Shown piece after piece: positions 8,195 through 62,775 of a stretch of 64,000 nt of DNA (position 1 is the stretch's first letter; every line of letters begins with the position of its first letter). Both the position numbers and the translations under genes were made by a program. Below the pieces are notes generated by a model. The model was not told the DNA's origin. It did no database searches and was given only the letters and a program-made list of their open reading frames with translations. The stretch is taken from the sequence record MN988522.1; one strand, written 5' to 3'.

Positions 8195-8436
8195 CAATAA
8201 ATAGTAATGTATTGCATGCAATTAATGATTTCAAGAACTATATCATTGAACTTGATAATGGTGTACCGTATCGTCGAGCAGTTCAGATAAGAGATCAAGC
8301 TAGTATCTGCAATGATCTGATGAACTATACGAGTGCCAGTATGTGGGATTCTAATCCTCCTGAGTGGCAGGAATTAGATTCACTAGTGACAATGGTATTT
8401 CAAAAGACAAATAAATTGATCTACAAGAGCGAATGA
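8191..8436 (+). CDS. Hypothetical protein
   Basis: ATGA overlap. Confidence 0.6.
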   Translation: MTINSNVLHAINDFKNYIIELDNGVPYRRAVQIRDQASICNDLMNYTSASMWDSNPPEWQELDSLVTMVFQKTNKLIYKSE

Positions 8437-8455
8437 GAGGTCGATTAACCTTCCT
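8429..8455 (+). promoter_or_regulatory. Phage promoter-like motif copy 3
   Basis: GCGAA at 8429, ACCTTCCT at 8448. Confidence 0.7.
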
Positions 8456-26687: not shown

Positions 26688-26714
26688 GCGAAGTTAGGTG
26701 CGATAAACCTTCCT
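26688..26714 (+). promoter_or_regulatory. Promoter-like motif copy 8
   Basis: GCGAA at 26688, ACCTTCCT at 26707. Confidence 0.7.
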
Positions 26715-28253: not shown

Positions 28254-28576
28254 AGTCTAGTAATCTATCTGCTGTCATAGAGCTCATGGATCTGAAAGAG
28301 AAGCTTAGACATCTAAGTGACTCAGAACATGGATTCATTAGAGTCGAGGTAGGTCAAGATAGTAGATGTAACTTCTTCAAAGATGGAAGTGCAAGTGTAG
28401 AAAGTGATTACGATGACGACGATGATGATCGTGTGATCCTGTCTAAGTCTAAGTCTAATTCTAAGCACAAGAAGATATCTTTCGACATCTACACTCGCAT
28501 TATACAGGTATTGCAGGACTCTATCTCGGACTGCAACGTGGCTCTCAAACAACTAGGAGTTGAGATTGATGACTAA
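28250..28576 (+). CDS. Hypothetical protein
   Basis: GTGA overlap. Confidence 0.55.
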   Translation: MKSSNLSAVIELMDLKEKLRHLSDSEHGFIRVEVGQDSRCNFFKDGSASVESDYDDDDDDRVILSKSKSNSKHKKISFDIYTRIIQVLQDSISDCNVALKQLGVEIDD

Positions 28577-29684
28577 TAATTCATTTGCAGATCGTCTTTC
28601 TAAGGTAACTACAGTACCTCCTCCAGCACCTGTAGGTAATCTACCTGTAGCTAAGCCAGCAGGGTTCTCAGGGATCAAGTCTAATACCAATTCTGATCTC
28701 GTTTACAAGAGTGTTGTTACCAAGGATGACATCGAGAATCTTGGTAAGGATATTGGTCGATCTGTAGGTGAAACTACTGAGAAGATCGTTCAGAAGGTTG
28801 CTCTCAGTAACTTCGGTGATCTAGGAGCTATCCTCGCTCAAGTTCAAGCTGAAGCTGATAAGCTGGATCCTAATGCACAATTCTCAGGTGTAGGTGGATG
28901 GATTAAGTCCAAATTCAAGGACATTAAATCCGTACTCATTCAACAGTTGAATAGCGCTAGTAAAGTATTTGATGATCTTGAAGTGAAGATCGCTGACAAT
29001 ATCGCTGTTCATCAAGAGTGGGTAAAGGATTTGGATCTCCTATACAAGGAGAATTACAATCACTTTAAAGCTATTAATGCACTCATCGTCAAGGCTACTG
29101 AGTGGAAGGCTATGATCGAAACTCAGATCAAGAATCTGCCTCCGATCGATCCTAATGATCCTGAAGCTATGATGAAGGGTGAGCTCATTCGAGAACTCGA
29201 ATCTCTGAAGAACCGTGCGGCTATCAAGCTCGACAACTTCACGAGACTTCGTATTATCTCGGAGAGTAATGCTCCTAAGATCAAGAGTCAGTCTGAGACA
29301 TCTGAAACGACTATCATGACTCTTCGTGATCTCATGGAACAAGCCATTCCGATGATCAAGATGGAATTTGCACTCTATCTCCAATCAATGGCATCTAAGT
29401 CTTCGCAAGATCTGATCAAGAATGGTCGTAATCTTGCTAATCAGACGCTGAAGAGATCTGCTGATGCAGCACATGATGCAGCTATCACTTCAGCTACTTC
29501 TCTGAACGACTCTATCGTTCAGACAGATACTCTGGATCACATCCGTAAGAAGATGCTTGATACTGTGCAGAATGTTCGTAAGATCCAGAGTGATGCACAG
29601 GCTAAACGAGATGCAGATGCTAAGACTCTCAAGGAGAGTTCTGCAGCTTATCTCACTGAATTGCAGAAGAACAACGCTATCTAA
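28560..29684 (+). CDS. telA: TelA-family toxic anion resistance protein (start probably MTNNS)
   Basis: Coiled-coil protein; LGDLG...LDP...GWIKSKF...IDDLE-like pattern; first gene of the Ter cluster. Confidence 0.75.
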   Translation: MRLMTNNSFADRLSKVTTVPPPAPVGNLPVAKPAGFSGIKSNTNSDLVYKSVVTKDDIENLGKDIGRSVGETTEKIVQKVALSNFGDLGAILAQVQAEADKLDPNAQFSGVGGWIKSKFKDIKSVLIQQLNSASKVFDDLEVKIADNIAVHQEWVKDLDLLYKENYNHFKAINALIVKATEWKAMIETQIKNLPPIDPNDPEAMMKGELIRELESLKNRAAIKLDNFTRLRIISESNAPKIKSQSETSETTIMTLRDLMEQAIPMIKMEFALYLQSMASKSSQDLIKNGRNLANQTLKRSADAAHDAAITSATSLNDSIVQTDTLDHIRKKMLDTVQNVRKIQSDAQAKRDADAKTLKESSAAYLTELQKNNAI

Positions 29685-29702
29685 CGAGGATAAATCATAG
29701 AT

Positions 29703-30416
29703 ATGACTAACGCTATCACACTCGACCTCACCAAGAAGTTTGAACTCAATCTCGAGAAGGCTGGTATCACTCAGATTCCAGTTCTGGAGACTCGTCTCGC
29801 AGTAGATCGTTCGGGTTCTATGCAGGAAGAATTCGATGCAGGATGGGTTGATAAGACGATCAATCTCTTCATCGTAGCAGCTATGAAGTTCGATGACAAT
29901 CAGTCTCTGGAAGTCGGATTCTTCAATACTGAATTCACTCAGACTCCTGAAGCTCAGGCTAGTGATGTAGGTACGTATCTTAAGAGCAAGGCTCGTAATA
30001 TTCGTCCGACATCTGGTACGTATTATGCTCCGATCATCGAGAATCTCGAGTCTAAGATGTCAGCCTCTGCTCCGATTCAGGAGAAGAAGTCTGGATTCTT
30101 CGGATTCTTCAAAGGAGACTCTTCTGCTCCAGCATCTAAGGAACGAGTAGCTAAGAACAAGGCATACGTTGGTGTTATCACTGACGGTGATCCAGGTGAC
30201 AAGCGCAGCTTCGAGTCTGCACTTGCTAATACTTCTGGCGATACATTCTACCAGTTCATCGCTATCGGTAATCAGATCGATGCCAACTATCTGAAGGGAC
30301 TGTCGAATCAGTACAAGCATGTCTCCTTCATTCATCTGAAGGATCCTTACAAGGTGACTGACGACTCCTTCTACGAGAACCTCTGCAATGAGAAATTTGT
30401 AGCCTGGACGAAGTAA
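29703..30416 (+). CDS. vWA domain protein (TerF/TerY-associated type)
   Basis: LAVDRSGSM, GTYYAP, VITDGDP, YQFIAIG. Confidence 0.88.
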   Translation: MTNAITLDLTKKFELNLEKAGITQIPVLETRLAVDRSGSMQEEFDAGWVDKTINLFIVAAMKFDDNQSLEVGFFNTEFTQTPEAQASDVGTYLKSKARNIRPTSGTYYAPIIENLESKMSASAPIQEKKSGFFGFFKGDSSAPASKERVAKNKAYVGVITDGDPGDKRSFESALANTSGDTFYQFIAIGNQIDANYLKGLSNQYKHVSFIHLKDPYKVTDDSFYENLCNEKFVAWTK

Positions 30417-30422
30417 TACTCT

Positions 30423-30460
30423 AAGTAGTAGCTTCGTACCAGCGGAGCTACTACTTTTCA
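30423..30460 (+). terminator. Intrinsic terminator
   Basis: AAGTAGTAGCT/AGCTACTACTT stem followed by TTCA. Confidence 0.7.
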
Positions 30461-30486
30461 TTAATCTGGTAATCCTAGAGGGTTAA

Positions 30487-31524
30487 ATGTTTAAATATTT
30501 CGGTGGATCGTTCATTTTCGCAGCTGCAGCATTGATTGGACTGTATCTCTTTACAGGCAATCCTGCTGCTCTAGTGACAGCAGTTGTCCTCTCGATCGTA
30601 GAGGTAGCTGTTAGCTTCGATAATGCTATCGTAAATGCATCAATCATGAAGACGATGTCTCCTTTCTGGAAGAAGATGTTCGTTACAGTCGGTATGTTGT
30701 TTGCAGTAGGATTCATGAGACTATACTTCCCGATTCAGATCGTATCAGCAATTGGAGGTATCTCACTTCATGAAGCTGGTCATCTAGCTCTTGCTGAGCC
30801 TGATCGATTCTCTCACATTCTTATCGAGTCTCATCACATCGTAGCTGGGTTTGGTGGTGCATTCCTTATGCTCGTAGCTTTGAAGTACTTTATCAATGCT
30901 GAGAAGGATGTCCACTGGGTACACGCTATTGAAGCACCTCTAGCATCTCTCGGTAAGCTTGATGAAGTCCAAGTTCTGATCGTAGCAGTTGTATCGTATA
31001 TCCTTTCTCGCTATCTCGGAGATCATGGTACAGAGTTCTTCTATGCTGCTTTGATCGGTATCGGTACACATATTGTAGTTGATCTGATCAAAGAAACTCT
31101 GAGTCATATCGATACGTTTCTTGCTAAGGGAGCAGATGTAGCAGTCAAGGGTGGTCTTGGTGCATTCATCTATCTTGAAGTACTTGATGCATCCTTCTCG
31201 TTCGATGGAGTCATCGCTGCATTCGCTATCACCAATCAGATTGCAGTTGTAGCTGCCGGTCTTGGTATCGGTGCTATGTTCGTACGTAGTCTGACTCTCA
31301 TGCTTGATGACAAGGATACTCTCACAACTTTCCGATATCTTGAGAGTGGTGCATTCTGGGCTATCGGTGGACTTGCTGCATTCATGTACATCAGCACACT
31401 TGTACATGTCTCAGAGTGGATTATCGCAGGATTCTCTGCTGTAGTCATTCTCGTATCGTTCCTACATTCGATTAAGGCTAACAAGGATGAAGAACTCCTA
31501 CAGCCTGTCCTCGAAATTCATTAA
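30487..31524 (+). CDS. DUF475 / TerC-like integral membrane protein
   Basis: EVAVSFDNAIVNA, GMLFAVGFMRLYFP, YLEVLDASFSFDGVIAAFA, GAMFVRSLT, YLESGAFWAIG. Confidence 0.92.
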   Translation: MFKYFGGSFIFAAAALIGLYLFTGNPAALVTAVVLSIVEVAVSFDNAIVNASIMKTMSPFWKKMFVTVGMLFAVGFMRLYFPIQIVSAIGGISLHEAGHLALAEPDRFSHILIESHHIVAGFGGAFLMLVALKYFINAEKDVHWVHAIEAPLASLGKLDEVQVLIVAVVSYILSRYLGDHGTEFFYAALIGIGTHIVVDLIKETLSHIDTFLAKGADVAVKGGLGAFIYLEVLDASFSFDGVIAAFAITNQIAVVAAGLGIGAMFVRSLTLMLDDKDTLTTFRYLESGAFWAIGGLAAFMYISTLVHVSEWIIAGFSAVVILVSFLHSIKANKDEELLQPVLEIH

Positions 31525-31553
31525 CATTAACTCCTAGATAAGGATTTGGAGAA

Positions 31554-32138
31554 ATGATCGTGCTCGACCTCAATAAAGACGCAGGTATCGTACTGGATCT
31601 CAGCAAGGAAGATCCGTCTCTTGAAACTCTCAAGATCAAGCTGGACTGGAATCCTCATCCAGTTCATGGTGCTAGCCTGACGGATGGCTTCGATCTGGAT
31701 ATCTTCGCATATGTTCTCAATGAACAAGGTAAGATCACTAGCGGTTCTGATGTTGTATTCTTCAACAACAAGAATTTCGCTAATGGTGCTATTGTTCTTC
31801 CTAAGGACAACCGTACTGGTGAAGGTGATGACGATGAAGAATTGCTCATCACCACGTCTAAGATTCCTGCAGACAAGAAGTCTGTAGCTATCTATGTGAC
31901 CATTCACAAGGCTACAGAACGTGGTCATCACTTCGGTATGGTATCTGGAGCATCTCTTCAGTTCATCAATGCTGACTCTGGTAAGATTATTGCCAAGTAT
32001 GACCTGACTGCCAACTACTCTGGTAATACTGCATTCTTTGGTGGTATCCTTTCTGTTGAGAATGGTAAGGGTAAGTTCCAATCGAATGGTGAGGCAGCAG
32101 ACGCTGATCCTAATCAGATCGCTCAGTTGTACGTCTAA
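31554..32138 (+). CDS. terD: TerD-family stress protein
   Basis: LDW...FDLD...VVFFNN...DNRTGEGDDDEE...HHFGMV. Confidence 0.92.
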   Translation: MIVLDLNKDAGIVLDLSKEDPSLETLKIKLDWNPHPVHGASLTDGFDLDIFAYVLNEQGKITSGSDVVFFNNKNFANGAIVLPKDNRTGEGDDDEELLITTSKIPADKKSVAIYVTIHKATERGHHFGMVSGASLQFINADSGKIIAKYDLTANYSGNTAFFGGILSVENGKGKFQSNGEAADADPNQIAQLYV

Positions 32139-40831: not shown

Positions 40832-40858
40832 GCGAAGGAGCGTCCCTTAAGCCTTCCT
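40832..40858 (+). promoter_or_regulatory. Promoter-like motif copy 11
   Basis: GCGAA at 40832, GCCTTCCT at 40851. Confidence 0.7.
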
Positions 40859-40958: not shown

Positions 40959-43214
40959 ATGGATCTCAATAAGTTCAAAGTAACTATCGGTGGTAAGTCT
41001 GTCAATGTGACCGCATTCACTCCTGACACTACAGCTACCAAGGCTGCAGGTAAGACTCACCATGTCCTTCTCATCGACCGTTCCGGTTCGATGTACTCCT
41101 CGATCAGTTATCTGATTGATCAGGTTCAGAATACAGTTAAGCTCATCGGTCAAGACGATCTGATTAGCATTCTCTGGTTCTCTGGTCAGGGTAGTAAGGG
41201 AGTTATCTGCCAAGGTGTTAAGGGATCTGAGGACATTACTACTGTTCTCAATAAGTTCCGTAGCGTTCTTGGTACGACATGCTTCTCTGAACCTCTCGCA
41301 GAGTCGACTAATGTTGTTGCTATGTACAAGGACGTTGTTGATCAGTCCGTTATCACTCTCTTCACGGACGGTTGCCCAGTAGTCAGCTGGTCTACTAAGG
41401 AAGAGACTGAACGTTGCCACGAGATCATTAAAGATCTCGTTGATGATCTCAATGTCTCGGCAGTCAATACCGTAGGTTATGGTAACTACTACAATCGTGA
41501 TTTCTTGCAGACTCTTTCCGAGGCATCGGATCAGGGGATGTTCGTTCACAGTAGTAAGATTGAACAATTTACTGACGTCTTCACCTCAGCAGTGGAGGTC
41601 GCCAGTGGTCTGGTACTTCAGTCTCTGGACATCGAAGTATCGGATGACGACGCTGATATTCTTTACGTAGGTAATGGTACCAGTGGTCTTCACAAGTCTG
41701 ACCTCAGCATGCGTCGTCTTGACAAGTCTCGTAACCTTGTCTTCATCGTATCTGAGAATTCCAAGTACGATCTGACGATCAACGGTGTTACGGATCACAA
41801 GATTGAGTCCATGACTCAGTCCTCGAATCCTGAATTCGTTGAGAACTTCCTCTACTCGTATGCAGATTCTCTCTACTATCGTGGAGAACGTCAGAAGGCT
41901 CTTGACATTATTGTCAACAATCTTCGCGACAAGCATCTCGCAGATCTGATGATGAATGCATTCACCATCGACGAAGTAGCTGATGTTCAGAAAGCTCTGA
42001 ACATTGCATGTGAGTTCAAGTCTGAACGTTACATCAGTGGTAAGTGCGGAGTAGGATACCTTCCCAAGAAGGATGCATTCTGCTTGATGGATCTCTTTAA
42101 TCTGTTCTTCAAGAAGGATGTAACCGCATATTATGTCCCATTCTCGAAGAATGTTGAGGAGTACCAGCGTATCGGTCGTAAGGTAACCGATGAATTCAAT
42201 CTGTTCACCAAGTCTCCTGAAGAAGTTATCGTACCACTGAACGACTTCGTCTGGAACAAGGACAAGCTGAATCTCTCGATCCGTATTCTGATCCCTGGTA
42301 CAGTAACTCTCAATCCGAAGGCTGCTAAGACAGTAGGACTTGCTTCTACCTATCCGTCCAAGATCTATCGTAACCATACGTTTATCAAAGACGGTCAGCT
42401 GAATATTAAGACTGCAGAATTCCTTCTGTCGTCTGATGTACTTGAAGTACTTAATGCGAATAAGATCGGTAACCGTATCCTGTCTACGGATGAGGATGTT
42501 GGTGGGATCCTTCTGAATCGAGTAGTAGTCGATCTCACGAAGCTTCCTGTTATCAATCGTCTTTACATTGATAACTCCGACTCTCTGGATGATCTGAAGG
42601 ATATTGTCGTCAATATCTCTAAGGCTGAGGCTTCCATCAAGGTAGCTAAGGATGCACTGGCAACCGTTCTGGCATCGAATGTGAATCTGACGAAGGTCGG
42701 AGCATATAAGGGTCTTACGGCTGATCAGATCACCGTACTCGAAAATCACGGTATCTCCAAGGATGGAGTCTACGGAGGTATCGATAATGTCAAGCCTAAG
42801 GCTGCGGATTCAGATAGCTACGAAGTACGTACTCTCGAATTCTATCTGAAGGGATTCTCGTCGCTTCCTTCCATCGCTGACTTCAACAAGATGCTCAATG
42901 GTGAGAAGAGAGTGAATGCTCCTGGACAAATGATGATCGACTATCTGAAGGATCTTGAATTCCGACTGAAGGCCGAGAATCTTAGTCTGAATCAGCCGAA
43001 TGCAGCTGTTAGAGACTTCCTTAATGAGGAACTCGAAGAGCTTAAGGCTGGCCTAGCTACTGCTCGTAATCATCTCAATGCTGTCAAGATGGCTAAGGTG
43101 CTTACACATGACTTCTTCCATGGTCTAGTTGCTGACGACAAGGGTAACTACTCTTATGGAGATGAGAATCATACTATGATTCTTCGTAATGACCGTACTG
43201 TAGAGTACGTTTAA
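40959..43214 (+). CDS. Large vWA (MIDAS) domain protein
   Basis: LLIDRSGSM, GTTCF, LFTDG, VGYG; long C-terminal region of unknown fold. Confidence 0.85.
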   Translation: MDLNKFKVTIGGKSVNVTAFTPDTTATKAAGKTHHVLLIDRSGSMYSSISYLIDQVQNTVKLIGQDDLISILWFSGQGSKGVICQGVKGSEDITTVLNKFRSVLGTTCFSEPLAESTNVVAMYKDVVDQSVITLFTDGCPVVSWSTKEETERCHEIIKDLVDDLNVSAVNTVGYGNYYNRDFLQTLSEASDQGMFVHSSKIEQFTDVFTSAVEVASGLVLQSLDIEVSDDDADILYVGNGTSGLHKSDLSMRRLDKSRNLVFIVSENSKYDLTINGVTDHKIESMTQSSNPEFVENFLYSYADSLYYRGERQKALDIIVNNLRDKHLADLMMNAFTIDEVADVQKALNIACEFKSERYISGKCGVGYLPKKDAFCLMDLFNLFFKKDVTAYYVPFSKNVEEYQRIGRKVTDEFNLFTKSPEEVIVPLNDFVWNKDKLNLSIRILIPGTVTLNPKAAKTVGLASTYPSKIYRNHTFIKDGQLNIKTAEFLLSSDVLEVLNANKIGNRILSTDEDVGGILLNRVVVDLTKLPVINRLYIDNSDSLDDLKDIVVNISKAEASIKVAKDALATVLASNVNLTKVGAYKGLTADQITVLENHGISKDGVYGGIDNVKPKAADSDSYEVRTLEFYLKGFSSLPSIADFNKMLNGEKRVNAPGQMMIDYLKDLEFRLKAENLSLNQPNAAVRDFLNEELEELKAGLATARNHLNAVKMAKVLTHDFFHGLVADDKGNYSYGDENHTMILRNDRTVEYV

Positions 43215-45860: not shown

Positions 45861-45887
45861 GCGAAGTAGAGGCCGGAGAGCCTTCCT
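45861..45887 (+). promoter_or_regulatory. Promoter-like motif copy 12
   Basis: GCGAA at 45861, GCCTTCCT at 45880. Confidence 0.7.
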
Positions 45888-49903: not shown

Positions 49904-50803
49904 ATGAACGATTTTAATGTAATCCTTACAGGTTCTGCTGGTTACATTGGAAGCATCGTTGGCGATCGTCTACTGAAATCCAATTCGATTGATTTGGAGA
50001 CAGTAGACGTCGTCTCTGACGTTCTTCCAGTAGATACTATCTTAACTGAAGTTGGTAATCTATCCAACAAGTCATCTGATGTCCTTGTTCATCTTGCTGC
50101 AAAGATCTCAGTAGTCGAATCTCATAAGCAAGCTCGTCAGTACTACGAGAACAATTGTAGTCAATTCCATGAGATGTTGAATGATCGTGGTAACTATTTC
50201 AAGCATGTTATCTATGCATCCTCTTTCTCGATTTATGATTCTGATTTGAGTATCTATCCTCAGTCTGTCTATGCATCCACCAAATACGAAGGTGAATGGA
50301 TTCTCAAGAGATGGGCTCAGATGACGAATCGAGATTATTCAATCCTACGATTTGCCAATCCAATTGGCGTTAGTCAATCACTTCACTCTCATATTGCAGA
50401 CCGTATTCAATCGAGCTATGCTAATGTTATGTGGAGACTTGCTCGATGCAAATTACTAGGTGAGATGTTCTACATTCATGATCTACCTGGTATGACACGT
50501 GATTTTTATCCCGTTGAATGGATTGGATACGCTATCGATTGGATCGCGAAGAATGGTCCCGTAGGTACTGTAAATCTAGGTAGTGGTAAGCCTGTATCGG
50601 TTATGGATCTTCTTCAGCATATCTGTGAGAAGTATAATATCAGTTACAAATATGTTCTACCACCTGAAGGTACTGCTCTAGGTATTACCAAGAAGGTTGA
50701 TGTATTCAAAGAAGGTATTCCTGATTTTGATACATACGATCCAGTTGTATATTGTGAGAAGTCGTTTTTAGATTATCTATCGTTGATTCAGAACGCGAAC
50801 TAA
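49904..50803 (+). CDS. NAD-dependent NDP-sugar epimerase/dehydratase (GalE-like)
   Basis: TGSAGYIGS, HLAA, YASS, YASTK (YxxxK), LRFANPIG, TRDF, NLGSG. Confidence 0.9.
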   Translation: MNDFNVILTGSAGYIGSIVGDRLLKSNSIDLETVDVVSDVLPVDTILTEVGNLSNKSSDVLVHLAAKISVVESHKQARQYYENNCSQFHEMLNDRGNYFKHVIYASSFSIYDSDLSIYPQSVYASTKYEGEWILKRWAQMTNRDYSILRFANPIGVSQSLHSHIADRIQSSYANVMWRLARCKLLGEMFYIHDLPGMTRDFYPVEWIGYAIDWIAKNGPVGTVNLGSGKPVSVMDLLQHICEKYNISYKYVLPPEGTALGITKKVDVFKEGIPDFDTYDPVVYCEKSFLDYLSLIQNAN

Positions 50804-50821
50804 CGCTAGATTAGCCTTCCT
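50795..50821 (+). promoter_or_regulatory. Promoter-like motif copy 13
   Basis: GCGAA at 50795, GCCTTCCT at 50814. Confidence 0.7.
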
Positions 50822-51053: not shown

Positions 51054-52241
51054 ATGAATTTTCTTTATATCACAAGAAGCATTGATCCGCTAGCTGCTGA
51101 TCATCGTCCTGAAGCATATGATCGTTATCGATTCTATGCTCCGATGATGTCACGACTAGCTGAGATCGGTGGAGGTGACGTCTACCTTCAGACTCGTTAT
51201 AATCCTAAGGATTATCGTCCTGGTGGTACGATTGAAAGAATGGAAAGAAATTTCCGTCTTCCTAAGAAGTACAAGACTGGTGATAAGATTGATATGATCG
51301 TATGTGCCATCTTCTGCCCAGACGATGACATTACATTCAATGAGGATCTGAACAAGTTTCGTCAGACTCTTGAAGATACAGGTGCTCCGTATATCTATCA
51401 TGACTCTGACAAAGAATTCTCTACTCAGGACGATCAGCAAGATCTTTTCCATCCAGGAAATAAGAACTATTTCCTTCAGACAATATCTAAGCTTCCAGAG
51501 GATGATATTCTCCGATCCCGACTACGCTGCGTGGCTACGTCGGTTCCGGATGCAGATTATCATCAGATTCTGAAGGATAATCTCAAGGTCGATGTAACGT
51601 ATCTACCTGCTACGTTCTGGGGAGACTGGAAAGATAAGTTTGGATACACTCCTCTTTCAGATCGTAAGTACGATCTGACATTCCTTCGTGACTTCTATCT
51701 GAATCCGAAGCGTTCAGTCATTTTGAAGAATCTTGGTACTGGTGTATCGGATATCAGTGTTCTTCTTGGATCTCGTAGTGGCGACCCTTCTAGTCGTGGA
51801 GGATACATCAGCCATAAGGTTCCGACGATTGATTTTGATCAGATGCGTCAAGGAGCTACGTACAATGATCTATCGAAGTACATGTCTAAGTCTCGTCTGA
51901 CTCCGTCTACGAGTATTTATATGCGTGTCACTTCTAAGCTATTCGAAGCAGCTGAGAGTCGTACTCTAGCACTACTCTTCTCTCCGTGCTTCTATTCAGA
52001 CGTAGTTGATCATCCTTCTGAGGCAGATGCTTATCTGAGTCAACTTGCTCTTGTAATTCCAGGATCCACTACTGTAAGTCAGTTGATTACACGTATTCGT
52101 AGTCTGACTGATGAAGAATACTTGAAGCTTGTTGAGGTTCAGGATAAGCTCGTTGAGACTGTATTCAGTATCAAATCTGATTACATCACAGGCAAGCTGA
52201 CCAAGATCATCACGGATTATGTAGGTAATGTGAATGGCTAA
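51054..52241 (+). CDS. GT-B fold glycosyltransferase (T4 BGT/CgeB-like)
   Basis: RKYDLTF, YNDLSKYMSKS, VTSKLFEAAES, QLITRIRSL; matches the C-lobe layout of GT-B enzymes as I recall it. Confidence 0.55.
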   Translation: MNFLYITRSIDPLAADHRPEAYDRYRFYAPMMSRLAEIGGGDVYLQTRYNPKDYRPGGTIERMERNFRLPKKYKTGDKIDMIVCAIFCPDDDITFNEDLNKFRQTLEDTGAPYIYHDSDKEFSTQDDQQDLFHPGNKNYFLQTISKLPEDDILRSRLRCVATSVPDADYHQILKDNLKVDVTYLPATFWGDWKDKFGYTPLSDRKYDLTFLRDFYLNPKRSVILKNLGTGVSDISVLLGSRSGDPSSRGGYISHKVPTIDFDQMRQGATYNDLSKYMSKSRLTPSTSIYMRVTSKLFEAAESRTLALLFSPCFYSDVVDHPSEADAYLSQLALVIPGSTTVSQLITRIRSLTDEEYLKLVEVQDKLVETVFSIKSDYITGKLTKIITDYVGNVNG

Positions 52242-53676: not shown

Positions 53677-54642
53677 ATGAAAACTGTATTAGGTCTTGAT
53701 CCTGGGTACGGAGACTTCAAGGTATGCTTCGGTAATTCTAAAGGGATTATCTCTAAGCTATACAAGTTCAACTCCGTACTAGGTCGTGTTGATGTCAGTC
53801 AACATATCAACGATACTCGAGTTTATGGATATAAAGGTACGACCTACTATGTAGGTGAGATGGCCTTGAAACTTGAGTCATCTCGAATCATCGACTTGAT
53901 GTCTTACAACAATCTGGAGACATTCTCTCCTCTCCTGATTGAACATGTCATCAATGAACTAGGAGAAGTTCCAGATATCGTCGTATGTGGTCTTTCGATC
54001 GCTCACGTTGACTATTCAGGATACTATCGAGATGCGATTCTTAACTATCTTGTTAAGGAGAAGAATCTTCCAATCAAGGATGTCCGCATCATCCCACAAG
54101 GTGTAGGTGGTAAGTTAACGTATGACAAGTATGGTCGTACATTCCCTGCCCTCACATCAGAATTCAGTGATGACAACAACTATGTAGGTTGTGATATTGG
54201 ATTCAATACACTCGATGTATTCCATGTCATTCAGAACAAGGTATCTCCTAACTTGATTAGAGGTATTGAGAGTCAAGGTGTAGTCAAGATCGTAACTCGA
54301 CTTCTTGAGTATATCAAGAATGACTACAGTCTGGAGTTCTCTGTTAAGGAAGGTAAGAACATCCTTGATAATGGTCAATTTAAGATCCGTGGACGTGAAT
54401 TTGATGTCACCAAACAGATTGAAGTGATCAAACGTTCTTATCTTGAAGAAGTCAAGGAACTCATCGAGAATGAATTCGGAGCAGTACTTGACAAGGTCGA
54501 GAAGATCAAGATGTTTGGAGGAGGTTCATATCTCTTCAATACGATGAATGACTCCTTCATCGAAACTCCAGAATCTCGTGCTGAATACTATAATTCCATC
54601 GGGAATTATCTACATGGCTTGACAATTGTCGAGAAAGATTAA
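53677..54642 (+). CDS. ParM/StbA-family actin-like ATPase
   Basis: GLDPGYGDFK (phosphate 1), IIPQGVG, GCDIGFNTLD (phosphate 2), FGGGS (adenosine). Confidence 0.9.
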   Translation: MKTVLGLDPGYGDFKVCFGNSKGIISKLYKFNSVLGRVDVSQHINDTRVYGYKGTTYYVGEMALKLESSRIIDLMSYNNLETFSPLLIEHVINELGEVPDIVVCGLSIAHVDYSGYYRDAILNYLVKEKNLPIKDVRIIPQGVGGKLTYDKYGRTFPALTSEFSDDNNYVGCDIGFNTLDVFHVIQNKVSPNLIRGIESQGVVKIVTRLLEYIKNDYSLEFSVKEGKNILDNGQFKIRGREFDVTKQIEVIKRSYLEEVKELIENEFGAVLDKVEKIKMFGGGSYLFNTMNDSFIETPESRAEYYNSIGNYLHGLTIVEKD

Positions 54643-55064: not shown

Positions 55065-55793
55065 ATGGCTCGTTGCTATGTAGGATGTAGTGGATTCTCG
55101 TATAATCATTGGAATGATAACTTCTACCCTGCAGGAGTAGAGCGGTTTTCATTTTATACGAGTCAATTTGATTCATTAGAGATCAATAGTTCATTCTACA
55201 GATTACCTAGTGCAAGCGTATTCTACTCATGGTATCGACGATCACCTGCTCATATGACATTCACTGTGAAAGCTCCTCAGACGATTACTCATCGTAAGAA
55301 GCTAAAGGATGCTGACGATATAGTTCAGAGATTCTATGAGAATACTCTTGAGCTAGGTGACAAGATGAAATGTGTCTTATGGCAGTTACCTCCTAATTTC
55401 TCCATAAGAATGTATGATCGTGTCAAGAAATTCTGTGACAGTATTCATAACAGATTTCCTAATTCAGCATTCGAGTTCAGACATCCTTCATGGATGCAGA
55501 CTCACGTACCTCAACTTCTATCTGCATACGACTTTGAGTTTGTACGTACAGATTTTCATAAATACGTAAATGTATCCATGGATGGATCCTCGTCTAAATT
55601 CCAGTACTATCGATTACATGGACCTACAGGTCAGTATCACGGTCGCTACACTGATGAGTTTCTTGAGAATATAGCTGATCGTCTAACGGATGGATCATTC
55701 GTATTCTTCGATAATGATAGTGGAGGTCAAGCTCCTAGGGATGCTAAAAGATTAATCAAAATTCTAGAGACAAGAAATGAAATTAAATTATAG
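55065..55793 (+). CDS. DUF72-family TIM-barrel protein
   Basis: YVGCSGFSY..W...FYP, EINSSFYRLP, KAPQTITH, LWQLPP, EFRHPSW, YYRLHG, FFDND. Confidence 0.93.
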   Translation: MARCYVGCSGFSYNHWNDNFYPAGVERFSFYTSQFDSLEINSSFYRLPSASVFYSWYRRSPAHMTFTVKAPQTITHRKKLKDADDIVQRFYENTLELGDKMKCVLWQLPPNFSIRMYDRVKKFCDSIHNRFPNSAFEFRHPSWMQTHVPQLLSAYDFEFVRTDFHKYVNVSMDGSSSKFQYYRLHGPTGQYHGRYTDEFLENIADRLTDGSFVFFDNDSGGQAPRDAKRLIKILETRNEIKL

Positions 55794-56322
55794 AGCATAT
55801 GCAGGAATTGGATCAAGAAGTACTCCTCCACATATTCTTGAATTTATGAGAATTCTAGCATTCAAGCTTGGATCTCAAGAAGATCCGTGGACTGGTCGAT
55901 CAGGTCACGCTGATGGTGCAGATGATGCATTCGAAGTAGGTATGGAACAAGCTAATGGACCTATGGAGATCTTTCTACCGTGGAGAGGTATGGCTAACAG
56001 TCGATGTAAGAGTGATTCTCCGTATTACGAAATCAAAACAATTGCTTACGATCTAGCTTCTAGGATTCACCCTAAATGGTACGGATTAACTCATGGAGCT
56101 AAGAAACTTCATGCTAGGAATACTTATCAAGTCTTAGGTTACGATCATCAGACTTGGAGTAAAGCTGTTGTATGCTATACTTCTGACGGTCTACCGATTG
56201 GAGGTACTCGTACAGCGATTAAGATAGCAGAGATGCACGGTATTCCGGTTATCAATCTAGGTGATCCTGAGTGTAAATACGAAACTCCTGATCAAGTTGT
56301 GGAATATTTAAACTCTCTATAG
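55777..56322 (+). CDS. SLOG-superfamily (DprA/Smf-like Rossmann) protein
   Basis: YAGIGSRSTP, RSGHADGADDAFE, IFLPW, HARNTYQVLG, GGTRTAI. Confidence 0.8.
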   Translation: MKLNYRAYAGIGSRSTPPHILEFMRILAFKLGSQEDPWTGRSGHADGADDAFEVGMEQANGPMEIFLPWRGMANSRCKSDSPYYEIKTIAYDLASRIHPKWYGLTHGAKKLHARNTYQVLGYDHQTWSKAVVCYTSDGLPIGGTRTAIKIAEMHGIPVINLGDPECKYETPDQVVEYLNSL

Positions 56323-56323
56323 A

Positions 56324-56350
56324 GCGAATCTAGCGTGGGAAAGCCTTCCT
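56324..56350 (+). promoter_or_regulatory. Promoter-like motif copy 14
   Basis: GCGAA at 56324, GCCTTCCT at 56343. Confidence 0.7.
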
Positions 56351-56378
56351 TCTTATTGTAGAATGGAGTGCAGATTCA

Positions 56379-57287
56379 TTGAGAGAATTCTATATTAAGG
56401 AATTCTTGAAGCTGAATGAGACTGTAGACTTGAGATATCTTAATAAGTATCTAGACGTTTGTTTAGGTACTTATGACAAAGACGTTAAATGTGAATATCA
56501 TCACGTGCTACCTCGATCAATCTTCGTCGAACACAAGGAGAATCCTAAGTTCGTAGTAAGGATATCGTTAAAAGCTCATTATCTAGCTCATAGAATTTTA
56601 ACTAAAGCCATACCTAATAATGTTCAGATGAAACATGCACATTATTTTATGTCTCATACTGAAAGATATAAAGGATTTGTGACTAGCAGAGTTTATGAGG
56701 TACTTAGAGAATTTCATTATCAGAAGAACTTAGGTAATAAGTATAATCTAGGTAAGAAGAACTCAGACGAGACTAAACGTAAACGTACTGTTAGCTGGAA
56801 GAAATCTGTAGAAGCTAATCCTGAAGGCATGAATAAATTCTTAGAAAGAAATTTCGGAAATAAACATGCTCAAGGATGTAAGTGGATGCATAATCCTACT
56901 ACAGATGAAACATCTTTAATACCATCTGATAAAATCCAGTCGAGACTATCTGAAGGATGGATATATGGTCGTAAATCCATAGTTGGACGTAGATGGAAAA
57001 TGTCAGATCAAGGTAGAAGAAATGTGTCGGAGTCCAAGAAAGGATCTACTCAGTCTGATTCTACTCGTCAAAAGAGATCTGAAGCTCTAAAAGGGAATAA
57101 AAATTCTCTTGGTTATAAACATTCGTCTGAAACTTCTAGAAAATTATCTGATAAATTAAAAGGTAATAGTCGTACAAAAGGTTACAGATGGATGAGTTGT
57201 AATAATGTAAATAAACTTGTAGCTCCTGATGAATTTAATCAATTGAGTTTATCAGGATGGAAATTCGGAAAATCTAAGGTATCATAG
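56379..57287 (+). mobile_element. Free-standing HNH homing endonuclease with NUMOD-type DNA-binding repeats
   Basis: EYHHVLPRS...LKAHYLAHRIL; repeated S.ETKRKR / WMHN / GW..G units; AT-rich; TTG start. Confidence 0.85.
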
Positions 57288-58190
57288 ATGTTTAACCTCA
57301 AAATTGATAATCCAAACTTGCACAGTATTCTTGAATCTCTGAGTGGGAAAAATATTGATTATTTTCACAATAATGGGAATTCAGGAGATTCAATAATATC
57401 GGTTGCAGCATATCAAACATTTGATAAGTTTGATATTAAAGTTTCGGCTTACAATAAACCTCGTGCTCATAAACAAACTAGTGACACACTCTTCATAGCC
57501 GGAGGGGGAAATCTTGTATCATATTACCCTGACTGTGAACGAGCTATCAAAGAGGGTATGAAGAAGTACGATAAAATTATTGTCCTTCCTCACTCTATCC
57601 GAGGTAAAGAAGAACTTCTCAAGAAGATGGATAAAAGGTTCACAGTCTTTACTCGTGAAGTTCCATCTCATGAATACGTTAAGTCGATGGTCAGATCGGA
57701 CGTAACTGTTCATCTTGAACATGATATGGCTTTCTTCATGGATGTAAAAGCTATCTTTGAAGATCCTACGATCAATGAGAAAGCTAATAAATTCTACATT
57801 AATAAACTTCGATCAATCGGTCGAGGTCCTGAAGATGTTATTGGCAAGGATAATTACTGTTTCCGTGAAGACGTCGAAGCAGTTGTAGAGGTTAAGTCTT
57901 CTCAGAATGTCGATATCTCTCATCTGTTCGAAAGAGGATTGGATCGTACGAACTCTTTCATCGCTGCTAATGCATTTCTAAAGTACATTGATGCTTCAAA
58001 GTCAATTACTACAAGTCGTCTTCATACAGGCATTGGTGCAGCTATGTGCGGTACTCCTGCTACGGTATTTGATAATTCATATGGCAAGATTTCTAGTATC
58101 TACGAATTCTCAATGAAGGATCGTGGATACAACTTCCGTGTAGGTCTCATTGATGAAATGAGATCAATTATCGAACGAATTGAGGACTGA
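57288..58190 (+). CDS. Polysaccharide pyruvyltransferase family protein
   Basis: GNSGDSII, AGGGNL, IVLPHSI, FTRE, HDMAF, TSRLHTGIGA, DNSYGK. Confidence 0.85.
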   Translation: MFNLKIDNPNLHSILESLSGKNIDYFHNNGNSGDSIISVAAYQTFDKFDIKVSAYNKPRAHKQTSDTLFIAGGGNLVSYYPDCERAIKEGMKKYDKIIVLPHSIRGKEELLKKMDKRFTVFTREVPSHEYVKSMVRSDVTVHLEHDMAFFMDVKAIFEDPTINEKANKFYINKLRSIGRGPEDVIGKDNYCFREDVEAVVEVKSSQNVDISHLFERGLDRTNSFIAANAFLKYIDASKSITTSRLHTGIGAAMCGTPATVFDNSYGKISSIYEFSMKDRGYNFRVGLIDEMRSIIERIED

Positions 58191-58781
58191 ATGAACATCT
58201 TCATCTTGGATCCAGATCCGATCAAGTCTGCTAGATCATACGTCGCGAGTCATCAGAAGATTATTCTGGAGGCTACTCAGATGTTATGCACTAACGTAAG
58301 ACTAACAAATGGTAAGCTTAGAGTCCCTATTCATCCATTTACAGGTCGTAAGAGAAAATTCTGGGTCCTCGATGGAGAGGAGTTAATGTACAAGGAGAAT
58401 CCTGAGAATCCTTCTAAGGGATTCTTCTGGATCAAGTCTTCTAACAAGATTTATGGTGCATGTCATGCTAATCATCCTTGGACTGTATGGGGTCGTAAGT
58501 CTAGGGAGAATTTCGTATGGATGCAAAACTTTGTTGAGATACTTAACAATGAATTTATGAGTCGAGGATATAGATCCCATGGATCAGCCTCTATAGCTAA
58601 GTCTCTAATCGTACCTGATTTACCTGAGACTGGACTGACTCCGATGCCTCACTGCGTTGATCCTGGATCTAAATCGGATGACGTAGTTGAAAGCTATAGA
58701 AATTATTATCGTAGAAGCAAGAAGCACTTACATGTATGGAAATCCGTTCCTATACCTGATTGGATAAATAATGAAGAATAG
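58191..58781 (+). CDS. Pyrimidine-dimer DNA glycosylase-like protein (DenV superfamily)
   Basis: MNIFILDPDP..SA...HQKIILEATQMLCT...HANHPWTVW...NFVW...AYR-type tail (SYRNYY). Confidence 0.8.
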   Translation: MNIFILDPDPIKSARSYVASHQKIILEATQMLCTNVRLTNGKLRVPIHPFTGRKRKFWVLDGEELMYKENPENPSKGFFWIKSSNKIYGACHANHPWTVWGRKSRENFVWMQNFVEILNNEFMSRGYRSHGSASIAKSLIVPDLPETGLTPMPHCVDPGSKSDDVVESYRNYYRRSKKHLHVWKSVPIPDWINNEE

Positions 58782-59250: not shown

Positions 59251-62200
59251 ATGTCAATTAATTCCAGAGACTACGCTCCGTTATTATCTTATGCTAAGAT
59301 GCTAACGTCAAGACTGTCTACTATTCCAGACGTCACGATGATTGGTAACTTTGCTAAGACTCCTCCTAATCTTAATGTCTTTCAAATTAAGCCTACTCTG
59401 ATCCGATTCGGTACTGATCTTCTCATTCAAGGTGACAAGTCAGATATCGTACTCGGATCTAATTATCTTGCTGCTCATCCTAAGGATGAATACGAAATCC
59501 TCGAATATGAGGATCCTAGCATCGCTGCACGTCGATTCGAGAGTACATGGGGTATGACTCTTGAAGAGTATGATGACCATGTTAAAGTTCTGAATACGCA
59601 AGTAGCTACTGTCAATAACGAAAGTTATGTCCTAGATGAGGAGACGAAAGCTAAGATGTCAGATGCATCAGACTTTCTCACACGATGGATTAGAATGTTC
59701 AGTTCTAAGACCAACAAAGCACCACTGCTAGTTGGTCATTCAGGTATCTCGAAATCTGCATTCGTTAAGGAAGTTATATCTCGTCTAGATGCTCAGTCGA
59801 CTGAATGGGGATATCGCCTCGTTGACATTCGTGCTGCTTATCTTGATAAGACTGACCTCATGGGTTACATCTCTGTCGAGAGTTTCAAGGGTAATGATGT
59901 ATGGACTGACTCTCCTAAGATTGAATTCTTGACATCTACATCTGAGTTCATCAAGGAGTGCCGTAAGTTCGTTACGACTACTCCTCGTGATGATGACAAC
60001 GGTGAGATGTGGGATATCGTCAAGGAATATTCCAAGACACCTGTCCTCTTCTTCGATGAAATCAATCGTGCACCTGCTTATATTCAAGCTCAGGTCATGA
60101 TCATCATCAACCAGCATCGTCTGAACGACTACTCGCTGGATCTCGCTCCTAAGATCGCTGCTGCTAACGTACCGATTGATATGGAAGATCTTGATGATAC
60201 GCAGAAAGAACTGATCAAGTACGTTCTGCAGGATGAGATCACCGATAAGGCAATCATTGACCGATTCATTCCTATAGAAATCAAAGGTAAGGATAAATCT
60301 GTTATTGATGCTACGTATTCATATCTCACCAGAAGATATGCTACGAGTGGTGCCAGTATGGACCTTCTTGAGTCTGTCTACAAGAAGGGTAAACCTCTTC
60401 ATGACATCACGACAATCGATAAGTATGGTAAGTTCAGATCACACCGTGGTCTAGAATTTGTATGTACGTACCTGTCAGGTTGTGAAGGCGCTAAAGAGAA
60501 ACCTATGCTATCAGTGATCAAGTCACTGATTGGTGAGAATGCTACGGATGATTATGTAAGTTATCTTGCTGAGAAATTCAAGACGACTAAAGAAAATCTC
60601 TCTAAGAAGATCTTTGATCTGAATGAGTCAACTTCCAAGTTTACAGCTCATTGCATCAAGTTCAATATTCCTACGATGCTACTAGGTCGTATGGGTATTG
60701 GTAAGACTGCTAAGATCAATGCTGCTACGAAAGAATTGGATGCTGATGTTATCAACATCGATCTTTCCTCGAGAGATCGTACTGATATCAGTGGATTCCC
60801 GAGTCAGTATTCCTTTGCTCAGTATATCTTCAGCAAGGGTGGTCAGAATGATGATCTAACAACATCCTCCGCATTCAGACAATTTGAAGCTCAACTAGTT
60901 AACAATCCTAATGTTCCTAAGAAGACAACTGGATTCGTAGGTAGTGGTACTCTTACTCGTCGTCTGGATGAAGCTAGAGCATCTGGTAAGAAACTAGTTA
61001 TTGTATTCGATGAGATCAATCGTGCATCTCCTATCGTCCAGTCAGCCGTCTTTGAAGCAATCTCTGATAAGCGATTCATGGGTGTATCTCTAGAAGGTAT
61101 CGACTACTCTGTCGTATCTGCTGGTAATTGGGAAGATCCTAACGAGTCTTCAGGTAACTATCAGGTTACACCTCTTGATACTGCTACTCTTCACCGATTT
61201 GCATCTCGAGTCATCGATAAGATGACAGAAGACGATATCGGAGAAATGAGAGACTTCATCAAGACAACGTATCCGAATACTTACTCTGCTCTCAATATGG
61301 GTCAGATGAGTAACAACGATATCGTTCAACTCCTGAATACTTCTTCAGATGAAGATGATAACGCTGAGCCAGGTACTGAATGGGCTAGACCCTCATTCTC
61401 GATGCGTACATTCCAGTCTCTGAACGAGATCCTGGATATGTATAAGTTCGTCTGGACTCAAGAGATGACGGTAGATGAATCGGACGATATCGTCAAGGTA
61501 CTCGAATCACCTAACTACATTCTCCGTGATCGTGCAGGTGAAGAAGTTACTCTGAGAACATCAGGTATAAAGAAGTACTTCCCGAGTCTAGTAGTTGAAG
61601 ACTTTATCGCTAAAGCTGCTCAGATGCTGGGTGACGATAATGTTTCAGTCCTCGATAAAAGTATGATTCTTGCAGAGCTTCAATACAATGAAGTCACTGC
61701 ATATCAGTCACTTGAGAAGGCTGTCCGAGGAGTCATTCCTGGATCAATGCTTAAGCATATGAGATCAGGTCTTCGTGTATACTATACGGATCTGAGTAAG
61801 GCTTCAGTAGGTGCTGTTGATCTTGATCAATTAGTTATGGAACTCTCGGATAATGAAATCCGTAAGGTTCTAAACAAGATGATCTCAAGATCTGAGGCTT
61901 CGAAGACTAATGACGTTATCAAGAGTGCTATCATTGCTCTTGGTCAGGCTAATGAGATCTCTGTCGATTATATTAACAAGATTCTCAGTCTGTACAAGTC
62001 AGTAGTTCCAACATCTACGATCAGTCTTGTTGATATCTTGAATCAGATTCCAGACGAGAATATCGTAAGTGGAGGGTCTGAGATTGTATTCAACTTCATA
62101 GATCTTGCTGCATTCCCTGAACGTGATGTCATCTTACAGTCAGGTTCTGTCTCAGTAGGTACACCAGTTTCGACTAATCCTACTGATTATAAGTTCCTAG

Positions 62201-62775
62201 GCTACTTGAAGGTTCCACTTGAATTTGGGTCTGTTAATCTTGGATCTAAATATGAAAAGGATCAGAGACTTTACATTCGAAATATCATTCCTAACTGCTT
62301 CAGAATCATCTGTAATGCTGATGCATTACAAGCGTACTATCGTTATGAGTTTACGATTTCTGATGCATTCTGGAAGATCGACACTATCAAACCTTCGACT
62401 AAACGATTTGAATACAATGTCGAATACGTAGCGAAGATTAAAGGTGTCAGCTTCAGAATGAAGATTGATAATATTCGTCATCCTGTAGCTCATAAGGATG
62501 GTGATCTGACTAAGCCTCTGACTAAGGATACAATTATCCAACGTGATACGACAGTCTTGTCAGGTATGCTGGCTACACAAGCAGTAGTATCTGACTCTTC
62601 TGTTAGTAACTTGACTAAGAATCTATCAGACGTTCTGACGGATGATGATATCACAATCATCAAAAGTACAGTGATGAAGAAGAAGGCAGATACTGCCAAG
62701 ATGTCACTCACTAATGACTATATGCAACTCATCCTTGTCGGATGGCGTAAAGTCGAGCCTAAGTTCTCATTCTAA
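59251..62775 (+). CDS. Tandem AAA+ ATPase (two MoxR/dynein-related modules) with long C-terminal region
   Basis: Module 1: GHSGISKS, DLMG, FFDEINRA, IIDRF. Module 2: GRMGIGKT, DISGFP, VFDEINRA, SAGN, TLHRF. Confidence 0.88.
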   Translation: MSINSRDYAPLLSYAKMLTSRLSTIPDVTMIGNFAKTPPNLNVFQIKPTLIRFGTDLLIQGDKSDIVLGSNYLAAHPKDEYEILEYEDPSIAARRFESTWGMTLEEYDDHVKVLNTQVATVNNESYVLDEETKAKMSDASDFLTRWIRMFSSKTNKAPLLVGHSGISKSAFVKEVISRLDAQSTEWGYRLVDIRAAYLDKTDLMGYISVESFKGNDVWTDSPKIEFLTSTSEFIKECRKFVTTTPRDDDNGEMWDIVKEYSKTPVLFFDEINRAPAYIQAQVMIIINQHRLNDYSLDLAPKIAAANVPIDMEDLDDTQKELIKYVLQDEITDKAIIDRFIPIEIKGKDKSVIDATYSYLTRRYATSGASMDLLESVYKKGKPLHDITTIDKYGKFRSHRGLEFVCTYLSGCEGAKEKPMLSVIKSLIGENATDDYVSYLAEKFKTTKENLSKKIFDLNESTSKFTAHCIKFNIPTMLLGRMGIGKTAKINAATKELDADVINIDLSSRDRTDISGFPSQYSFAQYIFSKGGQNDDLTTSSAFRQFEAQLVNNPNVPKKTTGFVGSGTLTRRLDEARASGKKLVIVFDEINRASPIVQSAVFEAISDKRFMGVSLEGIDYSVVSAGNWEDPNESSGNYQVTPLDTATLHRFASRVIDKMTEDDIGEMRDFIKTTYPNTYSALNMGQMSNNDIVQLLNTSSDEDDNAEPGTEWARPSFSMRTFQSLNEILDMYKFVWTQEMTVDESDDIVKVLESPNYILRDRAGEEVTLRTSGIKKYFPSLVVEDFIAKAAQMLGDDNVSVLDKSMILAELQYNEVTAYQSLEKAVRGVIPGSMLKHMRSGLRVYYTDLSKASVGAVDLDQLVMELSDNEIRKVLNKMISRSEASKTNDVIKSAIIALGQANEISVDYINKILSLYKSVVPTSTISLVDILNQIPDENIVSGGSEIVFNFIDLAAFPERDVILQSGSVSVGTPVSTNPTDYKFLGYLKVPLEFGSVNLGSKYEKDQRLYIRNIIPNCFRIICNADALQAYYRYEFTISDAFWKIDTIKPSTKRFEYNVEYVAKIKGVSFRMKIDNIRHPVAHKDGDLTKPLTKDTIIQRDTTVLSGMLATQAVVSDSSVSNLTKNLSDVLTDDDITIIKSTVMKKKADTAKMSLTNDYMQLILVGWRKVEPKFSF

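Follow-up and report, generated by a model that had tools for sequence, protein, structure and literature searches.

Why does a large phage of Rhizobium carry a gene for an enzyme that pyruvylates polysaccharides, and on which sugar would this enzyme act? The question is raised by EVB93_269, a gene in a stretch of 64,000 nucleotides (nt) from sequence record MN988522.1, the whole of which we call the window. The window is 100% identical in sequence to Rhizobium phage RHph_TM30 (TM30; MN988521.1), a member of the genus Cuauhnahuacvirus in the Kleczkowskaviridae with a genome of 207,623 bp; adding 62,182 to a window coordinate gives the coordinate in MN988521.1. The assignment of EVB93_269 as a soluble polysaccharide pyruvyltransferase (PF04230) of the type that depends on phosphoenolpyruvate (PEP) is fully supported by its sequence and predicted fold. 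On balance, we lean toward the view that the enzyme pyruvylates or caps an intermediate of a host envelope polysaccharide during infection and so would alter the surface of the infected cell. The depositors had earlier given the gene product the GenBank name "polysaccharide pyruvyl transferase protein"; the observation is real, yet the identity of the enzyme was already known at the level of annotation, and it does not represent a new enzyme class. What is new here is a sharply bounded tract of divergence within the pyruvyltransferase gene.

The PF04230 profile (PS_pyruv_trans) matches EVB93_269 over its full length (positions 1 to 280 of 280) and scores 60.6 bits, where the curated cutoff is 25.3. 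WbbZ of Klebsiella pneumoniae is a PEP-dependent pyruvyltransferase in vitro and caps the terminal beta-Galp of the O1 antigen (PMC10629545). The motifs conserved in WbbZ and its orthologues are NxGD, R-x3-(S/T) and a C-terminal histidine (PMC10629545), and these are present in EVB93_269 as N31-x-G33-D34, R123-x3-S127 and H246. In an alignment of 89 sequences of the subfamily, the phage protein keeps all 8 invariant and all 24 nearly invariant columns. It has no hydrophobic segment, its highest 19-residue Kyte-Doolittle value being 0.8 and its grand average of hydropathy (GRAVY) -0.39. A first-pass annotation, made from the letters of the DNA, had reported the full motif set of the PEP-dependent pyruvyltransferase family in a soluble protein, and both parts of this description stand: the family profile is matched in full, the three WbbZ motifs and the 32 conserved columns are kept, and the hydropathy values are those of a soluble protein. 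EVB93_269 matched no PHROG family and no NCBIfam model at E <= 0.01; the curated NCBIfam families of bacterial pyruvyltransferases include the CsaB and WcaK types.

The predicted structure leads to the same family. By sequence, the closest solved structure is that of K. pneumoniae WbbZ (6X1L; E 9.7e-27), with Pvg1p of Schizosaccharomyces pombe (5AX7) a weak second (E 0.016). The AlphaFold model of EVB93_269, built on the 89-sequence alignment, has a predicted local distance difference test (pLDDT) value of 95.7 and a predicted template modeling score (pTM) of 0.92, and consists of two Rossmann-like alpha/beta/alpha domains in a GT-B-like arrangement that is superimposable on solved pyruvyltransferases. 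The best Foldseek matches of this model were again 6X1L, with template modeling (TM) scores of 0.74/0.85, and then 5AX7 (0.66/0.60), and every later match reflected generic GT-B or Rossmann similarity. Identity to WbbZ and its plasmid-borne copies is 27 to 29%, and judged from the alignments EVB93_269 is a member of the same subfamily as WbbZ, not its orthologue. Its dependence on PEP would be expected by homology.

The relatives of the enzyme point to glycans as its field of action. A HMMER search of the full library with EVB93_269 found 1,540 relatives at E <= 1e-3, none of which exceeds 40% identity outside the sister phages. The three nearest cellular relatives (35 to 40% identity, including that of Mesorhizobium sp. 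WSM3224) adjoin genes for glycosyltransferases (GTs) of families GT2, GT4 or GT8 as well as methyltransferase genes. In the best 80 genome loci, Mesorhizobium sp. WSM3224 has the relative closest to EVB93_269 from a named organism (38% identity), followed by relatives from Sphingomonas, Variovorax, Methylobacterium, Hyphomicrobium and Acetobacteraceae, mostly soil Alphaproteobacteria, and the genus Rhizobium has no match among these 80 loci. In longer relatives, the enzyme is fused with a GT25, GT2, GT14-like or sugar-transporter domain, and the plasmid matches are WbbZ-carrying plasmids of Klebsiella, Citrobacter and Pseudochrobactrum, at about 29% identity. Among viruses, the collection of cultured phages gave matches in Cuauhnahuacvirus records only, while at least 21 viral contigs in IMG/VR carry relatives with 25 to 36% identity. 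In three large IMG/VR contigs the relative lies within a glycan island, with GT25, GT2, GT92 or NodZ-like transferases, sulfotransferases, LicD and an epimerase. The nearest viral structural neighbors are annotated pyruvyltransferases of giant viruses, namely, Mimivirus, Pithovirus and a Homavirus metagenome-assembled genome (MAG), one of which is fused to a GT8 domain. Every informative relative thus sits among, or is fused to, glycosyltransferases or other glycan genes. The gene itself matches the phage in composition (37.5% GC versus 39.7% for the phage). Rhizobium genomes are near 60% GC.

How would such an enzyme act in an infected Rhizobium cell? In the characterized members of the family, the acceptor is a terminal or lipid-linked saccharide, and the reaction takes place on the cytoplasmic side of the membrane (PMC10629545, PMC6801904). 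The acidic exopolysaccharide (EPS) of Rhizobium is built from an octasaccharide repeat that is natively pyruvylated (PMC7589315), and the pyruvate of EPS is added on lipid-bound intermediates (PMC7589315, PMC6801904). We hypothesize that EVB93_269 is transcribed rightward with early or middle genes from a start that probably lies at the repeated motif at 56324-56350, in TM30 through the open reading frame (ORF) of a homing endonuclease, and that its product belongs to the WbbZ-like branch, has the predicted two-domain GT-B-like fold and works in the cytoplasm as a PEP-dependent ketal-pyruvyltransferase. On the cytoplasmic side of the inner membrane, the enzyme would take enolpyruvate from PEP and place it on a hexose, terminal or subterminal, of a host intermediate that is bound to lipid and may belong to an acidic EPS, a capsular polysaccharide or an O-antigen. 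The pyruvate would add negative charge, cap the chain or do both, and the infected cell would thereby present an altered surface glycan. The phage might benefit if fewer particles then adsorbed, whether newcomers (superinfection) or its own progeny, which could otherwise be trapped on infected cells and debris. The acceptor, and likewise the gain for the phage, are our inference. The tail module of the phage encodes two SGNH/GDSL hydrolases and a pectin-lyase-fold protein, a set that suggests a decorated surface polysaccharide as the receptor.

The gene also has an unusual pattern of variation between sister phages. The tract of divergence covers the 5' 700 to 720 nt or so of the gene, with three allele types in the first 250 to 270 nt and two in the remainder, and the 3' end of the gene (about 180 nt) and all sequence downstream are identical between the sister phages. 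Between TM30 and Y65, there are 19 to 31 differences per 100 nt over about 700 nt from the ATG and then 0, and upstream of the adjacent endonuclease slot there are 9 differences in 400 nt and then essentially none over 2.1 kb. The differences between TM30 and TM61 are confined to the first 250 to 270 nt of the gene. Overall, the pyruvyltransferase genes of TM30 and Y65 are 79.8% identical in DNA and 84.7% in protein, with a whole-gene synonymous divergence (dS) of 1.155 and a ratio of nonsynonymous to synonymous divergence (dN/dS) of 0.09; the divergent tract itself is about 75% identical, as opposed to 97.8 to 100% DNA identity for 16 flanking genes. The gene is under purifying selection, and the TM30, TM61 and Y65 alleles retain all 27 of the conserved residues examined. 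We read the mosaic as a small recombination hot spot, with a cassette-like exchange of old functional alleles between phage lineages.

The tract starts at the slot of a homing endonuclease, which would fit endonuclease-associated co-conversion. In TM30 this slot, between a promoter-like motif and the pyruvyltransferase gene, is filled by EVB93_268, whose stop codon abuts the pyruvyltransferase ATG. The same 302-amino-acid endonuclease occupies the slot in TM40, a related one of 176 amino acids (64% identity over 91 amino acids) occupies it in TM61, and the slot is empty in Y65 and TM39. The flanks of the TM30 and TM61 types look like co-conversion tracts of different lengths. The Y65 type of allele was found in four phages isolated on Rhizobium phaseoli, the TM61 type on Rhizobium etli, and the TM30 type in isolates from Rhizobium sp. 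N941 and Rhizobium leguminosarum CIAT894. TM21B seems to lack the gene and TM39 to encode a shorter product, but both records are partial and contain runs of N here (89 and 20), and these differences were set aside as assembly artefacts.

Several observations weigh against a role in remodeling the surface polysaccharide of the host. The gene is an orphan with no adjacent glycosyltransferase gene, unlike wbbZ and most relatives. With 27 to 29% identity to WbbZ and no more than 40% to a protein from any cellular organism, EVB93_269 is too distant for the acceptor specificity of these enzymes to be transferred to it. A plasmid search at E 1e-3 found no match on a Rhizobium or Sinorhizobium plasmid, and the link between allele and isolation host is confounded with phage species in the nine records available. 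In addition, a changed surface needs time, as it must reach the outer membrane soon enough to matter in a lytic infection; no integrase or repressor annotation was seen among the 384 features of TM30, from which we take the phage to be lytic.

Comparison with known systems shows where the phage enzyme fits. Pyruvylation of sugars by virus-encoded enzymes is already established, because a phage-borne wbbY-wbbZ pair from the metagenomic Caudovirales genome BK049963.1 was shown to be functional (PMC10629545) and the fibril polysaccharide of Mimivirus contains 4,6-pyruvylated GlcNAc (PMC8456856). EVB93_269 shares with WbbZ (6X1L) the Pfam family, the aligned motifs and the small, soluble, two-domain GT-B-like architecture. 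However, WbbZ is paired with the polymerase-type glycosyltransferase WbbY, whereas EVB93_269 lacks a glycosyltransferase neighbor, and the host of TM30 is an alphaproteobacterium with different surface glycans. WbbZ forms a 3,4-S linkage on beta-Galp; the type of linkage is not inferable for EVB93_269. Moreover, TM30 is a Kleczkowskaviridae member of about 208 kb, unlike the uncultured BK049963.1. The second-best structural match, Pvg1p, is a PEP-dependent pyruvyltransferase that makes 4,6-ketals on terminal beta-Gal, but this enzyme of the eukaryotic Golgi shares 18% identity with EVB93_269 and is the larger protein (about 330 to 350 amino acids in the solved chains). PssM and PssK of R. leguminosarum and ExoV of Sinorhizobium meliloti, which pyruvylate EPS in rhizobia, carry out the same chemistry on lipid-linked repeat units of polysaccharides that belong to the phage host itself, but the rhizobial protein closest to EVB93_269 among the best 80 genome loci, that of Mesorhizobium, belongs to a different kind of cluster. 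The giant-virus enzymes have TM scores of 0.72 to 0.77 on the query; they are only 23 to 27% identical to it, their viruses infect eukaryotes, and they are often joined to a glycosyltransferase, by fusion or within a gene cluster.

Might the enzyme instead act on a glycan that the phage itself builds? Such a route would require the epimerase-like protein EVB93_258 to supply an activated sugar, EVB93_260 to transfer it to a virion protein or another acceptor and the pyruvyltransferase to cap it. It finds precedent in the pyruvylated GlcNAc of the Mimivirus fibrils (PMC8456856) and in the giant-virus pyruvyltransferases as the nearest viral structural neighbors, with their one GT8 fusion; the Kleczkowskaviridae are, according to a preprint, unusually rich in carbohydrate-active genes, and an epimerase gene and a gene for a weakly GT-B-like protein lie 5 to 7 kb upstream, conserved in the sister phages. 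The identity of these putative partners is less clear. EVB93_258 scores 65 bits against the galE model TIGR01179, which has a cutoff of 262, and its best match in the PDB is the generic epimerase/dehydratase 6DNT (4e-11), with GalE entries near 1e-7, so that its assignment as GalE is not secure by sequence, and it is a possible partner of the pyruvyltransferase. EVB93_260 matches no Pfam or NCBIfam family and has two homologues among 5.8 billion proteins; its AlphaFold model, from a 3-sequence alignment, is unusable (pLDDT 44). A fold search led to the BFVD entry A0A7S5RAD4, which is identical to EVB93_260 and whose public model weakly resembles that of the pyruvyltransferase, in a GT-B-like manner (E 7e-4, TM scores 0.43/0.34). 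This is a weak hint that EVB93_260 may be a GT-B-like partner, and a lead toward an epimerase-transferase-pyruvyltransferase route in the phage. Homologue searches with EVB93_260 and EVB93_261 were near-empty, and one distant relative of EVB93_261 lies in a phage replication module, not in a glycan module. Unannotated proteins of about 400 amino acids upstream of the nearest cellular relatives were considered as homologues of EVB93_260 and rejected, being related neither to it nor to one another, and a fusion of the epimerase with EVB93_260 annotated in TM39 was not relied on, because that record is gappy and the fusion is probably an assembly artefact. Apart from the weakness of the GT-B match and the unusable model, it speaks against a glycan built by the phage that the three genes are not adjacent and have unrelated genes between them, and that the pyruvyltransferase gene belongs to an early or middle rightward block far from the leftward structural module. 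To our knowledge, virion glycosylation has no precedent in this group of phages, and we consider a glycan made by the phage rather unlikely. A role in metabolic takeover, with the pyruvate placed on some other host carbohydrate (a peptidoglycan-linked polymer, a precursor of periplasmic glucan or a nucleotide sugar) and not serving a surface change, would suit an orphan enzyme that lacks a partner glycosyltransferase and whose 27 to 40% identity to other proteins gives no readout of specificity, and Pvg1p accepts simple Gal glycosides in vitro (PMC6801904). However, the relatives all stand in polysaccharide-assembly clusters and no member of the family is known to act on such substrates, which makes this role distinctly improbable. 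Finally, the gene could be a passenger that is kept because it flanks the target of the homing endonuclease and is copied along with it. The divergent tract begins exactly at the slot and two endonuclease variants occupy this slot, as expected for a passenger; a dN/dS of 0.09 with a dS above 1 nevertheless indicates strong purifying selection, the compared alleles have no stop codons, the 27 conserved residues are intact across the three allele types, and the gene is present also where the slot is empty. We consider it highly improbable that the gene is such a passenger.

The first-pass annotation had proposed another target, a galactosylated base in the DNA of the phage, with host EPS or receptors and virion glycans as the fallback. 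In this proposal the enzyme would add a pyruvate ketal to a hexose on a modified base and thereby produce an anionic hypermodified nucleotide. The GC content of the phage (39.7%) and its many genes of nucleotide metabolism could be taken in its favor. DNA glucosyltransferases also have the GT-B fold, which EVB93_260 might share, but the match of the pyruvyltransferase model to T4 alpha-glucosyltransferase is generic (rank 40, TM score 0.36). One unrelated viral contig of 173 kb in IMG/VR encodes consecutively LicD, a GT25 protein, a relative of the pyruvyltransferase, a 190-amino-acid ORF and a weak ThyA-family protein (65 bits); it is the sole place seen where a relative adjoins a possible pyrimidine-modifying enzyme, at a distance of 560 nt. 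Against modification of DNA, no ThyA-type pyrimidine hydroxymethylase is annotated among the 384 features of TM30 and no ThyA domain was found in the 30 larger unannotated ORFs; likewise, no glycosyltransferase is annotated among these features and none was found by Pfam in the same 30 ORFs, nor was a dCTPase-type exclusion system annotated or found. The phage encodes ThyX, dCMP deaminase, dUTPase and dihydrofolate reductase (DHFR), which together amount to an ordinary route to dTTP. Neither does the neighborhood of the gene (the DprA-like protein, the homing endonuclease, the PHROG 624 protein and the AAA ATPase) contain a glycosyltransferase domain. The characterized members of the family all act on glycans, as WbbZ does in capping O-antigen, and the exchange of the 5' two-thirds of the gene between otherwise identical genomes is the behavior of an accessory gene for host interaction, not of core DNA chemistry. 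We know of no description of a pyruvylated, anionic sugar on nucleic acid. A 2019 review of pyruvylated glycoconjugates makes no mention of DNA (PMC6801904). Pyruvylation of a sugar on phage DNA is thus extremely improbable, even though most of the genome carries no annotation, and we attach just as little credence to the version in which EVB93_258 and the GT-B-like EVB93_260 assist in placing the pyruvylated sugar there. The fallback has fared better, given the glycan clusters and glycosyltransferase fusions in which the relatives are found.

The first-pass annotation had also placed the pyruvyltransferase gene next to one for a DNA-repair glycosylase. The gene in question, EVB93_270, has no Pfam match even at E 10, no NCBIfam match and no relative in the PDB, and PHROG 624, to which it belongs, is called "DNA binding protein"; a glycosylase function was not confirmed for it. 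Depositors of the 153 phage records that hold a relative have used various names ("pyrimidine dimer DNA glycosylase/endonuclease V," "DNA binding protein" and "hypothetical"). Because only 9 of these 153 records, all of Rhizobium phages, also carry the pyruvyltransferase, the adjacency of the two genes has no functional weight.

Transcription of the gene may depend on a repeated intergenic element. The repeat GCGAA-N14-RCCTTCCT has seven exact copies in the window, all on the plus strand, where 0.01 would be expected, and six of the seven stand 20 to 101 nt before an annotated start. The core RCCTTCCT occurs 12 times on the plus strand and once on the minus strand. A scan for the sigma-70 consensus was uninformative (20 sites versus 22.9 expected, no enrichment). 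We infer that the repeat is a promoter; it departs from the sigma-70 consensus and may define a phage-specific class of transcription. The pyruvyltransferase gene had been described as lying under a copy of a phage promoter. The repeat does exist, but in TM30 the nearest copy is 937 nt upstream of the gene with the endonuclease ORF between them, and its function as a promoter is presumptive. In the sister phages Y65 and TM39, the motif stands directly upstream of the pyruvyltransferase ATG.

Table 1. Positions in the window of the pyruvyltransferase gene, associated elements and other features mentioned in the text
Feature	Position (nt)	Strand	Description
Pyruvyltransferase gene EVB93_269 (QIG71376.1)	57288-58190	+	ATG-to-stop ORF, 300 amino acids, soluble, WbbZ-like subfamily of PF04230
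Divergent mosaic tract	57288-58007	+	5' ~700-720 nt of the pyruvyltransferase gene
Homing endonuclease EVB93_268	56379-57287	+	302 amino acids, HNH/NUMOD3; PHROG 655 and 12434 (homing/HNH endonuclease)
Promoter-like motif copy nearest the gene	56322-56354 (exact repeat 56324-56350)	+	Repeated intergenic element
Copies of GCGAA-N14-RCCTTCCT	2847-2873, 8429-8455, 26688-26714, 40832-40858, 45861-45887, 50795-50821, 56324-56350	+	
Downstream neighbor EVB93_270	58191-58781	+	196 amino acids, PHROG 624 "DNA binding protein"
Short-chain dehydrogenase/reductase (SDR) epimerase/dehydratase EVB93_258	49904-50803	+	Annotated as UDP-glucose 4-epimerase; ~6.5 kb upstream; PF01370, 57 bits
EVB93_260	51054-52241	+	Unannotated, 395 amino acids, follows the epimerase gene
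DUF72 and DprA-like/SLOG-type proteins	55065-56322		Directly upstream of the endonuclease slot
AAA+ protein and following genes	59251-62775		1,174 amino acids; then three conserved unannotated proteins
Actin-like protein	53677-54642		PHROG 691 "partition protein"
Tellurite-resistance-like block	28569-32138		Within the replication region
Second large vWA protein	40959-43214		

Other genes of the phage were noted as well. The pair upstream of the endonuclease slot consists of a DUF72 (YecE-like) protein and a DprA-like/SLOG-type protein of PHROG 768. On the downstream side, the large AAA+ protein contains two AAA+ modules (AAA_5/MoxR-dynein-like) and is 100% identical as a protein between TM30 and Y65. 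TM30 also encodes an actin-like protein (domains ALP_N, MreB-like_C and Alp7A_like_C), in a phage with no annotated integrase or repressor. The tellurite-resistance-like block comprises a toxic anion resistance protein, a vWA protein, a DUF475 membrane protein and a TerD-like protein, and the second large vWA protein is encoded elsewhere in the window. Outside the window, the genome encodes a diverged adenylosuccinate-synthetase-like protein, with ordinary PurA as its best PDB match (E 1.6e-16), and an HD-domain protein, a distant match to YfbR, directly upstream of the family A DNA polymerase (PolA). The pairing of a PurA-like protein with an HD-domain protein and PolA recalls phages that replace adenine with diaminopurine, a trait that our results neither confirm nor exclude.

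In summary, if EVB93_269 modifies a host envelope polysaccharide, as we lean toward believing, a large rhizobiophage would recharge or cap the surface polysaccharide of its host with an enzyme of its own, and the acceptor-side part of the gene would be swapped between lineages as a cassette beside a homing endonuclease. Pyruvylation of rhizobial EPS matters for nodulation (PMC6801904), and the phage would offer a compact example of phage-driven remodeling of a receptor or EPS in a plant symbiont. The published case of phage-borne wbbYZ, in a gut phage that has not been cultured, would then be joined by soil phages that are in culture and whose hosts are known.

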